Made by a program: the position numbers and the translations under genes. Below, one piece after another: positions 28,001 to 31,000 of a DNA stretch of 64,000 nucleotides. Location of the stretch: positions 310,001 to 374,000 of the forward strand of contig NIVC01000221.1 of NCBI GenBank assembly GCA_002269645.1, given 5' to 3'. Origin of the DNA: Macrostomum lignano (lineage: Eukaryota). Under the pieces are notes generated by a model, which did not search any database, was not told the origin of the DNA, and saw only the letters and a list, made by a program, of their open reading frames with translations. How positions within the stretch are numbered: the stretch's first letter is position 1; each line of letters starts with the position of its first letter.

Positions 28001-31000
28001 ACGAGTACTATTGGGTGTCCCTGGCTCGCCTGTTCCCCTTCAAGGACGGCGATCTGGGCGAGTCAGCGGCTGCCGCTGCTGGATCGGCTGGGACTGAGAC
28101 GGCTGAGCTGATGGACAAATTCAACGAGGGGGTGGCCTTGGCTCAGGAGGCCTGGAGACTCAGGTGTGCATCAGCTCGTTGTTTTAGCTTCTGGGATGCT
28201 TCATCTCATTCATCCCAGCTTCTCTGAGATGATTCATCTCCTATTCATCCCAGCCTCTCTGGGATGCTTCATCTCCTTTTCATCCCAGCCTCTCTGAGAT
28301 GCTTCATCTATTCATCTCAGCCTCTCTGAGATGCTTCATCTACGGATCCCAGCCTCCCTGAGATGCTTCATCTCCTATTCATCCCAGCCTCACCCAGGCT
28401 CCTCACGAACCCCCACAGAGACCGAGACCGGCAGGACGCCCGCCGCCTTCTCGGCGAGCTCTCCGCCGTGCCGCAGCCGGTGTCAGCTGACTTTGACCAG
28501 CCTCAGCCAGCCGCTCCCGCTAGTCAGGAGCCGCAGCTGCAGCAGGCGGAAGCCTCAGCCTCCAGCCTGATGGCCAAATGTGACTGCCAGCGCCGGGGTC
28601 GCCACTGCGGCGAGCTGGACGGCTGCGCGAACCGGCTGGCGGGCATCGAGTGCCACCCGGCCGCCTGCGGGCCCGGCTGCCTGAACCAGCGGCTCTTCAG
28701 GTTCGGCTGGCTCAATGGGGCTGTGTGAAAATGGCACTCTGGCAGTGTCACTCTCAGTGTCACTCTGACACTGTCACTCTCAAAGTGTCACTCTGACACT
28801 GCCGCTCTCAATGTCTCACTCTGACACTGTCACTCTCAAAGTGTCACTCTGACACTGCCGCTCTCAATGTCTCACTCTGACACTGTCACTCTCAAAGTGT
28901 CACTCTGACACTGCCGCTCTCAATGTCTCACTCTGACACGTCACTCTCAAAATCTCACTCTGACACTGTCACTCTCAAAGTCTCACTCTGACACTGTCAC
29001 TCTCAATGTCTCACTCTGACTCTGTCACTCTCAAAGTCTCACTCTGACACTGTCACTCTCAAAGTATCACTCTGACACTGTCACTCTCAAAGTATCACTC
29101 TGACACTGTCACTCTCAAAGTGTCACTCTGAGACTGTCACTCTCAATGTGTCACTCTGACACTGCCGCTCTCAAAGTTTTACTCTGACACCGTCACTCTT
29201 TAAGTGTCACTCTGAGACTGTCACTCTCAAAATGGCACTCTGTCACTCCTAAAATGCCGCACTGAACTCGCACAGCTCCATGCCAATTGCCACCCCCAAT
29301 CCCACTGCCCCCCCCGATTTCGCAGGCCAGCCAATCAGCGCTCCGAACTGGCCGTCTTCAAACGGCCCCGCCTGGACGCAGGCGGCGGCGCCTCCTGGGC
29401 GGTCGGCCTGGCGCCAAGCGGCTGCCCCGGCGGTCGCCTCTCGGCCGGCCAGCCGCTGCCCTGCGACCTGCCGGGCGACCCGGTGGAGCCGCTCGAGGCC
29501 CGGCGCCGACTGCGGCTGCTGCTCCGCTCGGTGCACCCGCCGCCTCCGTCAGGCCGCTGATGCTGCGGCTCGACTGGCGCCGCCTGCTGGACGTCGGCGG
29601 CCTGGCGGCCCGGCTGGCGGCTCCTCCGGCGGCTTGTCGGCGGCCTCGGCGAGCGAACGCGCGTTTCGAGCGCCGGTCGACAGCTGGCGGCGCCGGCGAC
29701 CTCCGCTGCGGCCTGTTTGCCGTCGGCTGCGGGGTGTCGCCGGGCGAGGAGCTCGTCGTCGACTGGGACGGCGCCGCCTGCGACCGAGGAGCCGCTGACG
29801 GGGAGGGAGATGCTGGCCATGCGGCTGAGGAGTGCCCGGATTTCTGGTGAGTGACTTTGGGTTATTGCAGTGACTTTTAGAGTGCTTGTGAGTGATGAGA
29901 GTGACATCTGGAGTGCTTGTGAGTGATGGGAGTGACATCTGGAGTGACATCTGGAGTGCCTGTGAGTGATTAGAGTGACAGTTGGAGTGCTTGTGAGTGA
30001 TGAGAGTGACATCTGGAGTGCCTGTGAGTGATGAGGCAGCTCAGACGCTCGGACAAAAGCTGTCCAGATGCCGCAGCTCGGTCTCAGTGAGCGCCTCCTT
30101 GGCGATGGCGTAGCAAATCATGCGGCCGCGAAGAGCAGCTTCTCTTTGAGTCGAGAAGCCGAGTCGGAGACAGGTGGAAGATCCAGAGCGCAGTTTGCCA
30201 CCAAAATCGACCCCAGGGCCAATGAATGATCCATTGAAATAAAGTGTAGTTAGACTTCCTGTAGTGAACACGCCCCCAACTGACACCAGCTGGGGTGTGT
30301 CGTCAGTAGACATTAGAACCGAGTTGCTCAAGCGAGTGACCACGTTCGAAGCTGAAAATACGTGTCCAACATCGATTTTACCATTCAGATCACCAAATCG
30401 TCCACCAGCAGGTATCTCATACATGCAGTCATAGAAGTAATGGTAGACTTGGGAAACATTTGTTTGACGCGTCAGCTTAGCATAGAATGTAAAATTATTG
30501 GCAGCTGTCAGGAAATTTGATACAAGCGTATTGTTATCATTGTCCACCTCAATGTAGTTTTCAGTACTTCCTCCTGAAAAATGGGCTCCGTGAGAGTCAC
30601 GAGAGACAGATCCGTTTGGAGTGGCCAGGTACTTGCTTGGGTTCACCAGGTTTGTGTAGCTCTTCCCGAAGTCAAACAGAATGAGCAGTTTCGAAAGTAG
30701 AGTTGTCGTTGGTGTGGTGGTTAGAGCTTCAGTTGTCGACGGGGTGGTTGGAGCTTCAGTTGTCGACGGGGTGGTTGGAGCTTCAGTTGTCGTTGGCGCT
30801 ATGGTTGGGGCTTCAGTTGTCGTTGGCGCTATGGTTGGAGCTTCAGTTGTCGTCGACGCGGTGGTTGGAGCTTCAGTTGTCGTCGGCGCTATGGTTGGAG
30901 CTTCAGTTGTCGTCGACGCTATGGTTGGAGCTTCAGTTGTTGTTGGCGCGGCGGTTGGAGCTTCAGTTGTTGTTGACGCTATGGTTTGAGCTTCAGTTGT

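Follow-up and report, generated by a model that had tools for sequence, protein, structure and literature searches.

An NSD-like paralogue of Macrostomum lignano with conserved reader modules and a degenerate SET region

The window analyzed here, a 64,000-nucleotide stretch of the Macrostomum lignano contig NIVC01000221.1 (positions 310,001 to 374,000; assembly GCA_002269645.1), carries an NSD-like gene immediately downstream of a Mi-2/CHD4 gene, both on the forward strand. The translated open reading frames (ORFs) of the Mi-2/CHD4 gene (positions 6299 to 19722) specify PHD fingers, chromodomains, an SNF2 helicase and a CHDCT2 domain, the last of which is recognized by Pfam at positions 18171 to 18758 with an E value of 8e-63; the gene comprises many exons and its introns are filled with minisatellites. 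The domain content of the downstream gene, together with this neighbor, bears out an earlier note on the same DNA, which had proposed an NSD-family gene adjoining Mi-2. The downstream gene corresponds to Mlig028383.g2 (PAA87681.1), with which the ORF of the window copy, as assembled, matches exactly, and the annotation of PAA87681.1 describes a truncated product of 690 amino acids. A protein of the Mlig028383 paralogue is already present in GenBank under the designation "hypothetical protein."

The NSD-like gene is resolved into six exons. Exon 1 (21667 to 22001) extends from a candidate ATG to the start of the first PWWP domain (PWWP1), with the Pfam PWWP match split across two frames, while exon 2 (22682 to 23728), for which the splice sites were read, encodes the remainder of PWWP1, followed by a linker that is acidic and rich in Ser, and PHD1 to PHD3. 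Exon 3 (27538 to 28163), the best conserved portion of the gene, encodes a variant PHD finger, PHD4, and PWWP2, and is followed by exon 4 (28419 to 28700), which specifies a linker and an AWS domain with all seven Cys residues present. Exon 5 (29326 to 29846), containing the degenerate SET and post-SET region, has exact boundaries, namely, the acceptor cag at 29323 to 29325 and the donor gtgagt from 29847. The AWS exon ends in phase 2, so that exon 5 is read in window frame 1, and this incoming frame leads to a TGA at 29558 to 29560. Exon 6 (34201 to 34402; acceptor cacag/G) encodes a single C-terminal PHD finger of the C4HC3 type (Pfam E = 2e-4) and the stop codon, and its join to exon 5 is seen in the transcript-based model of a sister copy, g1 (P0007). 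The Mlig028383 protein of approximately 1,000 amino acids accordingly comprises PWWP1, PHD1 to PHD3, the variant PHD, PHD4, PWWP2, AWS, and the C-terminal PHD.

Two further features lie within introns. Intron 5 harbors a single-ORF gene on the reverse strand (30041 to 31588), identified from the ORF listing and Pfam and present in all three copies of the locus, whose product combines a PAN-like N terminus, a Thr/Pro mucin-like repeat, and a ConA-like (Laminin_G_3) C terminus; this nested gene is separate from the NSD-like gene. Intron 2 contains a truncated Pao/BEL-type LTR retroelement, also on the reverse strand (24485 to 27352), which was detected by repeat search and which retains a gag-derived DUF1759 domain (E = 1e-9). 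Its 260-nucleotide LTRs (24485 to 24744 and 27093 to 27352) are 100% identical, and the insertion, which is very young, is private to the window copy, being missing in the other two (L001 and L003).

Mlig028383 has the domain order of canonical human NSD1, NSD2, and NSD3 and of their M. lignano counterparts Mlig026212 and Mlig014479, i.e., PWWP1, PHD1 to PHD3, variant PHD, PHD4, PWWP2, AWS, SET, post-SET, and C-terminal PHD. The variant PHD-PHD4-PWWP2 region of exon 3 matches human NSD2 with a phmmer E value of 1.7e-44. Two PWWP domains are present, as two stretches of the g1 protein are matched by Pfam PWWP (2.2e-32); in the window, PWWP2 scores 1.9e-19 and PWWP1 is split by a frameshift. The NSD-specific variant PHD (PHDvar_NSD) is matched at 1.4e-8 in the window and with 36.4 bits in the g1 protein, against a cutoff of 27. 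Although the Pfam PHD and PHD_NSD matches to PHD1 to PHD3 of exon 2 are weak, an alignment of the invariant Cys and His residues shows that the zinc ligands of PHD1 to PHD4 are unchanged relative to canonical NSD proteins. The AWS domain is borderline by score, reaching 23.6 bits on the exon and 22.1 bits in the full protein where the Pfam cutoff is 23.3, and all seven of its Cys residues align. The C5HCH module (PF17982), which scores in the canonical paralogue, yielded no match in Mlig028383, where one PHD finger only is found. When columns that are near-invariant among NSD proteins were counted, 37 of 39 were found to be retained in exon 3, 14 of 21 in AWS, and 22 of 56 in the SET and post-SET region, the difference between exon 3 and SET being highly significant (Fisher P = 9e-9). 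The central proposal of the earlier note, that PWWP, PHD, and AWS are conserved while all SAM-binding and catalytic SET motifs are lost, is supported.

Sequence comparison confirms that the segment from 29326 to 29846 is a SET-derived exon of the NSD-like gene. The SET remnant aligns with the SET domain of the canonical M. lignano NSD by BLASTP (E = 6e-7; 28% identity over 104 amino acids), and AWS plus SET matches NSD1 structures by phmmer (E = 6e-4), mainly through AWS. Pfam SET (PF00856), by which the canonical paralogue is matched with 95.8 bits, gave no match at an E value of ≤10 in either window frame or in the intact g1 protein. The SET homology detected by these alignments is real but weak. 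The signatures of some SET core beta-strands are still present (MLxLD, GDLRxGLFA, and GEEL), within a sequence rich in Ala, Gly, Arg, and Pro that is encoded by an exon with a G+C content of about 77 to 78%, compared with 54% for the canonical SET exon. The length of the ORF was rejected as evidence, given that 173 codons without a stop would arise by chance with a probability of approximately 0.15 at such a G+C content.

In frame 1 of exon 5, SWAV (29393 to 29404) is the counterpart of GWGL, the GWG motif being replaced by SWA (29393 to 29401). The remaining SET homology lies in frame 0 and includes PLMLRLD (29554 to 29574), a 10-residue stretch (29695 to 29724), and GEELVVDW (29743 to 29766). 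EYVGE is lost (CDLPGD), as are the Tyr of FYML (PLMLRLD) and the terminal Tyr of ELTFNY, which has become ELVVDW; both this change and that of GWG to SWA had been reported in the earlier note for this exon. NHxC is absent from every frame of exon 5, consistent with the reported loss of RFxNHSC in all frames. The counterpart of that motif is, however, most likely RFERRS, since MAFFT aligns RFMNHS with ARFERRS (29659 to 29679), with NH replaced by RR and the Cys by Thr. BLASTP instead pairs the motif with RLAAPPAAC, in agreement with the previously suggested LAAPPAAC, which was probably misassigned; NH is missing in both alignments. An 11-residue stretch (29776 to 29808) aligns with the post-SET consensus aCxCGaxnCsG and retains its first Cys alone, so that two of the three post-SET Cys residues are gone and, with the Cys of NHSC, three of the four Cys residues of the zinc site are missing. 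The motifs had been described as altered by substitution, and their residues are indeed replaced; the region also differs in length, as eight canonical residues (PNCETQKW) are deleted and five anchor-to-anchor intervals are longer, by 4, 7, 4, 7, and 1 amino acids, all of them in frame in g1. That this decay is not a read or assembly artifact is shown by its occurrence in three genomic copies and in an older assembly.

Catalysis by SET enzymes is known to require both the NH dyad and the C-terminal Tyr. Loss of catalysis in Mlig028383 is well supported at the level of sequence, and we infer that its protein would neither methylate lysine nor bind SAM. When the AWS-SET remnant was modeled with AlphaFold, the pLDDT was 36 from the single sequence and 43.5 when 20 rows of canonical NSD SET sequences were supplied as an alignment, values too low to justify inspection of a SAM pocket or a fold search. 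The region may not be folded as a SET domain at all.

The separate intact NSD paralogue for which the earlier note had advised a search was found elsewhere in the M. lignano genome as Mlig026212.g1 and Mlig014479.g2 (PAA63624.1 and PAA79320.1; P0003 and P0015), with complete GWG, NHSC, ELTFNY, and CxCx4C motifs. Mlig028383 shares 72% identity with this canonical NSD in PWWP1 and 66% in PWWP2. Synonymous divergence between the two is saturated (dS of 0.7 to above 2), and nonsynonymous divergence was for this reason used solely to rank the domains, giving a dN of 0.23 for PWWP1, 0.32 for PWWP2, 0.90 for SET, and 1.3 to 1.4 for the linkers. Mlig028383 departs from the canonical NSDs in the loss of SET and post-SET motifs, the missing C5HCH module, the G+C content of its SET exon (78% versus 54%), and its intron positions, all of which differ.

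In a neighbor-joining tree of the exon 3 region, Mlig028383 pairs with the canonical M. lignano NSD as its sister (60% bootstrap support), and the two join one flatworm-like sequence from Logan in a clade with 98% support, indicating that the paralogue arose in the lineage leading to M. lignano. A word-indexed search for orthologues returned M. lignano proteins and one JGI fragment alone, along with many low-complexity candidates, and an exhaustive representative search with exon 3 found nothing beyond M. lignano at 50% to 99% identity. Of the foreign sequences, Logan DRR639055 (P0023) comes closest; it is a canonical NSD, in which exons for SET and AWS are both present. On the present evidence, Mlig028383 is one lineage-specific paralogue, and no mention, expression value, or phenotype was found for it in the literature and supplements searched. 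A retrogene origin is conceivable, because none of its five intron positions coincides with any of the four of the canonical gene, but the Logan relative also differs in exon structure.

The assembly holds three copies of Mlig028383 that are approximately 99% identical, each located just downstream of a copy of Mi-2/CHD4. One of these, g1, encodes 1,007 amino acids and is open through the SET remnant and the C-terminal PHD finger to the stop codon. Among the three copies, 36 synonymous and 12 nonsynonymous changes were counted (dN/dS of approximately 0.11; P = 5e-13 against neutrality), and within the folded reader domains the respective numbers are 27 and 2 (dN/dS of approximately 0.03). Changes private to the window copy, g2, are distributed in the same manner (12 synonymous and 3 nonsynonymous). 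The substitution pattern thus indicates that Mlig028383 as a whole, and its readers especially, is under purifying selection, in line with the selection on the readers proposed in the earlier note. The SET remnant differs among the copies at a single, synonymous site where 9.7 differences would be expected, a shortfall for which gene conversion may be responsible, as identity between the copies is mosaic. Since the readers are under purifying selection and a separate intact NSD gene exists, Mlig028383 probably specifies a reader-only protein. We consider it probable that the gene is an NSD paralogue which has kept its readers and whose SET and post-SET regions have drifted beyond catalysis.

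The window copy itself is frame-broken as assembled. Within PWWP1, the frame is shifted by the lack of one C near 21836 (GGCCC[C]GAG), a base that is present in both L001 and L003, and a missing G at 29529 (CTCGG[G]TGC, with GG in place of the GGG of the sister copies) leads to the TGA in exon 5 and to the continuation of the SET homology in the next frame; g3 carries a third frame-breaking 1-bp deletion at another site, equivalent to window position 27832, and g1 carries none, so that two of the three copies are broken. The proposition that the window breaks are assembly errors only, and that each of the three copies specifies one and the same intact protein of approximately 1,000 amino acids, is one to which we assign an even chance; it concerns the state of the window copy alone and is compatible with the explanation favored above. 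All three deletions are losses of single bases in or next to runs of C or G, each at a separate site, and models based on the older ML2 assembly (P0005 and P0002) read through both deletion sites of the window copy. The present assembly was produced with Canu from PacBio CLR reads and then corrected with Pilon, and duplicated blocks with an identity of 95% or more account for 180 Mb of it (PMC5730564). Transcript support for the gene comes from the GenBank models, which were built from RNA-seq-based transcript assemblies (PMC5730564). Because the private changes of g2 still stand at 12 to 3, with no sign of relaxed constraint, its deletions would reflect consensus errors left over from PacBio sequencing or else damage that struck a redundant copy very recently. 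Private mutations are conceivable, as the copy is physically distinct through its private LTR insertion, and the approximately 4.4 kb of Mi-2 exons that were compared with the sister copies contain no frame-shifting indel, as against three in approximately 6.1 kb of NSD-like coding sequence, although this excess is not significant.

A more far-reaching alternative, which the earlier note had raised as decay of a pseudogene, is that the whole Mlig028383 family is dying, i.e., that a redundant NSD duplicate has passed through SET decay, frameshifts, and LTR insertion as successive steps of pseudogenization and yields no functional product. The two 1-bp deletions and premature TGA of the window copy, the deletion in g3, the insertion with identical LTRs, the missing Pfam SET match, the low-confidence structure predictions, and the fruitless orthologue searches are all in keeping with such a course. 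That part of the alternative which concerns a broken window copy holds for the assembly as it stands, but the ratio of 12 nonsynonymous to 36 synonymous changes is not that of a neutral sequence, either for the family or, by its own changes, for the window copy. Furthermore, g1 is fully open, every indel in the SET remnant is in frame, the LTR insertion is intronic, and 95% of the invariant reader positions and all zinc ligands have been retained despite saturated dS relative to the canonical gene; the demise of the entire family is thus considered improbable. That enzymatic activity persists in the remnant, or that noncanonical residues allow it to bind SAM or a substrate, is most improbable, given that all four motif groups which contact SAM or the lysine channel (GWG, EYVGE/FY, NHSC, and ELTFNY) are altered, PNCETQKW is deleted, and the post-SET zinc site is largely dismantled, even though some core strands survive and AWS is intact.

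Relative to the canonical NSDs, Mlig028383 has lost GxG, NH, both catalytic-site Tyr positions, the NHSC Cys, and all but one of the three post-SET Cys residues, with its readers kept. If functional, the resulting reader-only protein would serve as a reader or adaptor, docking on methylated or unmodified H3 tails via its PWWP and PHD modules in a manner that might resemble NSD3-short or plant SUVH2/9; a role as scaffold or antagonist is purely conjectural, as is a functional connection with Mi-2. A stronger version, which we regard as possible but rather unlikely, holds that selection maintains Mlig028383 as a dedicated reader-only NSD and a true pseudo-methyltransferase conserved across Macrostomum. 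Its Arg/Ala/Gly/Pro-rich SET remnant would have acquired a new role (for example, in nucleosome or nucleic acid binding or in regulation), and the protein would act at H3K36-methylated chromatin as a competitor or guide of the canonical NSD, perhaps in concert with the neighboring Mi-2/NuRD remodeler.

The short isoform of NSD3, NSD3S, is without methyltransferase capacity, keeps a PWWP reader, and acts as an adaptor linking BRD4 to the remodeler CHD8 (PMC10815784). By analogy, Mlig028383 may likewise be an NSD-derived, noncatalytic protein with retained readers. NSD3S is, however, produced by an active gene as an alternative isoform in which the SET region is wholly absent, whereas Mlig028383 is a separate gene with a SET remnant in addition to PHD, PWWP2, and AWS; moreover, the adjacency of Mlig028383 and Mi-2 is known as a genomic one only. 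In Arabidopsis, SUVH2 and SUVH9 are paralogues of active SET methyltransferases; they show no detectable activity, and their reader domain recruits other machinery (PMC3898904). In evolutionary terms they parallel Mlig028383, as a dead SET domain is coupled with a live reader, but they are of the SUV39 type, read methylated DNA through an SRA domain, retain a recognizable and folded SET domain, and are conserved across plants. The SET region of Mlig028383 is far more degraded, and the gene is known here from M. lignano alone.

The NSD enzymes have mainly been studied as H3K36 writers, and to our knowledge noncatalytic roles of the family are known from splice isoforms and engineered mutants only. 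If the stronger version given above is true, Mlig028383 would represent the first natural NSD-family pseudoenzyme with its own gene. A separate gene with all of the readers and no catalysis would amount to a natural separation-of-function allele, which could show what NSD readers do alone in a flatworm in which RNA interference and transgenesis work. It would likewise illustrate the divergence of duplicated chromatin enzymes in a recently duplicated genome.

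The window is composed of eukaryotic DNA with G+C-rich exons and introns that are almost entirely minisatellite (Macrostomum lignano, a free-living flatworm; assembly GCA_002269645.1, Mlig_3_7). The earlier note placed its NSD-like protein next to Mi-2, and a complete Mi-2/CHD4 gene (6299-19722; PHD fingers, chromodomains, helicase, and CHDCT2 [E = 8e-63]) is located 5′ of the NSD-like gene Mlig028383 on the same, plus, strand. The exons of the latter encode PWWP1 (E1, 21667-22001), a linker and PHD1-3 (E2, 22682-23728), a variant PHD, PHD4, and PWWP2 (E3, 27538-28163), AWS (E4, 28419-28700), a SET remnant (E5, 29326-29846), and a C-terminal PHD finger with the stop codon (E6, 34201-34402). 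Splice sites were taken from the DNA and are consistent with the transcript-based model of a second copy, g1; the coordinates 29326-29846 therefore represent exact exon boundaries. Within intron 5, the minus strand harbors a 515-aa single-ORF gene (30041-31588) with a PAN-like N terminus, an extended mucin repeat of the TTEAPT type, and a C terminus of the ConA-like/Laminin_G_3 type; this gene is conserved in each of the three locus copies.

The reader modules proved to be conserved, as claimed previously: E3 aligns to human NSD2 with E = 1.7e-44, and AWS, scored on its exon, reaches the Pfam cutoff with all seven cysteines kept. No Pfam SET match was obtained for E5 in any window frame or in the intact g1 copy, against 95.8 bits for the wholly intact SET domain of a canonical M. 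lignano NSD paralogue encoded at a separate locus (L002; Mlig026212.g1/Mlig014479.g2). Even so, E5 is genuinely homologous to SET, as BLASTP aligns it to this canonical domain (E = 6e-7, 28% identity over 104 aa). Alignment with 19 canonical NSDs bore out the reported motif losses, with GWG changed to SWA, ELTFNY to ELVVDW, and post-SET CxCx4C to CxRx4G, and further showed EYVGE changed to DLPGD (preceded by a 7-aa insertion) and FYMLTLD to PLMLRLD. Two particulars of the earlier note require correction. The LAAPPAAC that it paired with RFxNHSC is indeed the BLASTP counterpart, but RFERRST is the more likely one, NH being absent whichever alignment is used; and replacement by substitution holds for GWG and ELTFNY, whereas PNCETQKW is deleted and five intervals are altered in length. 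Of the alignment columns with 90% or higher conservation among NSD homologues, E3 retains 37 of 39, AWS 14 of 21, and SET plus post-SET 22 of 56 (E3 versus SET, Fisher P = 9e-9). AlphaFold models of the SET remnant region were of low confidence and were not used as evidence.

Amino acid identity between the dead-SET and canonical paralogues is 72% in PWWP1 (dN 0.23), 66% in PWWP2 (0.32), 50% in PHDvar plus PHD4 (0.45), 45% in AWS (0.65), 32% in SET (0.90), and 17 to 20% in the linkers (1.3 to 1.4); dS is saturated, and the duplication is therefore old. In a neighbor-joining tree of the E3 region, the dead-SET paralogue is sister to the canonical NSD (60% bootstrap), and both fall with one Logan-derived sequence (DRR639055) in a 98% clade, which places the duplication within this flatworm lineage. 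Protein searches returned no orthologue of the dead-SET gene outside M. lignano. The five introns of the dead-SET gene (junctions 22001/22682, 23728/27538, 28163/28419, 28700/29326, and 29846/34201) and the four of the canonical gene (L002, 11596/13490, 13984/15769, 16143/18483, and 18895/20122) have no position in common, the last pair lying ~6 to 13 codons apart in equal phase, a pattern which suggests either that introns have turned over heavily or that the gene began as a retrocopy and gained introns later. The exon structure of a related Logan contig (L004) is different again.

The assembly contains three copies of the dead-SET gene (g1, g2 in the window, and g3), with exons ~99% identical and each 3′ of its own Mi-2 copy; as this adjacency is due to segmental duplication only, it lends no support to a functional link with Mi-2. 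A truncated Pao/BEL-type LTR retroelement in intron 2 (24485-27352, minus strand; gag DUF1759) is confined to the window copy, marking it as a distinct locus, and its 260-nt LTRs are 100% identical, so the insertion is very recent. The window ORF as assembled runs from MYRFGR to a TGA at 29558, and every residue corresponds to PAA87681.1 (690 aa, “hypothetical protein BOX15_Mlig028383g2”). The earlier note did not mention that the frame entering E5 from E4 stops at this TGA (29558-29560), with later SET homology in the next frame, or that PWWP1 is also divided over two frames. Two bases present in both g1 and g3 are missing from the window, a C at 21836 (GGCCC[C]GAG) and a G at 29529 (CTCGG[G]TGC). 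A different single base is lost from E3 of g3, and g1, free of such losses, remains open across the SET remnant to the C-terminal PHD finger (1,007 aa); two older ML2-based models, P0005 and P0002, read through both window deletion sites. All three indels are single-base losses within or next to C/G runs, and in the PacBio/Canu, Pilon-polished assembly, duplicated blocks with identities of 95% or more add up to 180 Mb (PMC5730564); the window's two deletions may be either real or assembly errors. SET degeneration is the same in every copy and is therefore no sequencing artifact.

The dead-SET gene is under purifying selection, the window copy included for most of its separate history. Across the whole coding sequence of the three copies, 36 synonymous and 12 nonsynonymous changes were counted (dN/dS ~0.11; binomial P = 5e-13 versus neutrality), with 8 and 9 (of the 12 nonsynonymous) in the E2 linker, 27 and 2 in the folded reader domains plus AWS, and 1 and 0 in E5; changes private to the window copy number 12 and 3 (P = 1e-5). 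With one substitution, where the rate seen in the other exons predicts ~10 (9.7) and the synonymous rate ~30, E5 has, strikingly, diverged less than any other part of the gene (29326-29846 versus 14994-15515 of L001, the g3 locus, and 11229-11750 of L003, the g1 locus). Gene conversion is an alternative explanation to constraint. Identity between copies is a mosaic in which some 1-kb stretches, noncoding DNA included, are 100% identical while their neighbors are 90 to 97% identical (e.g., 21001-22250 versus L001 9347-10600), indicating recombination or gene conversion among duplicated chromosomes. The G+C content of E5, the highest in the gene (77%; 84% at codon positions 1 and 3), also fits, the SET exon reaching about 78% in the dead-SET gene versus 54% in its canonical counterpart. 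GC-biased gene conversion among the copies is a candidate cause of both E5 homogeneity and the drift toward Ala/Gly/Arg/Pro. Translation of the remnant is better argued from its length changes than from low divergence or ORF length, the latter being uninformative (P ~0.15): relative to canonical SET, five interanchor intervals differ by +4, +7, +4, +7, and +1 aa, all in frame in g1, an outcome with a chance of roughly (1/3)^5 and so unlikely for neutral DNA.

Each intron of the NSD-like gene is ~80% or more minisatellite array (22078-22645, 23747-24464, 27351-27526, 28190-28391, 28728-29247, and 29869-30035), with an intron-specific unit of 18 to 45 nt and merely short unique flanks carrying the splice sites; Mi-2 introns provide further examples (8300-9400 and 12950-13550). 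The array on one side of exon 5 is approximately the reverse complement of that on the other, and units of the 3′ array contain GTGAGTGA, the string of the exon 5 donor site, so that one may ask whether splice sites are created or carried by arrays of this kind. Downstream lie extra copies of the 3′ end of the gene: a complete one, 100% identical to most of the last exon (PHD finger; 49151-49345), and two truncated 57-nt copies with ~1.1 kb of 3′ flank (42435-42491 and 62272-62328), each preceded by a 28-nt exon 5 piece joined to intron 5-type repeats (41197-41224 and 61003-61030). The blocks at 41 to 43.6 kb and 61 to 63.4 kb form a tandem duplication spaced by ~19.8 kb. A very large tandem array of ~3.5 kb (36000-39500; 45-nt period in translation, extreme GC skew of +0.4 to +0.6) yields spurious minus-strand ORFs of up to 847 aa.

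The earlier observation is thus confirmed with corrections, and its interpretation is partly supported: selection on the readers of the proposed pseudo-methyltransferase stands, while a scaffold or antagonist role is conjectural. Models of the gene derive from transcripts; no expression or phenotype data for Mlig028383 were found in the literature. As judged from motif content, all SAM-binding and catalytic motifs of SET are lost beside selected, intact readers and a separate intact writer, and established SET-domain biochemistry predicts a product unable to bind SAM or to methylate. NSD3-short, a nonwriting reader that links BRD4 to CHD8 as an adaptor (PMC10815784), and SUVH2/9, SET proteins that lack activity and bring in Pol V (PMC3898904), offer analogies for its predicted role. 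The sequence was already in the database as a hypothetical protein. SET paralogues without activity and NSD isoforms lacking SET are known; the present gene adds a member of the NSD family in which the SET domain itself is dead, and its product may, by analogy, work as a chromatin reader or adaptor.
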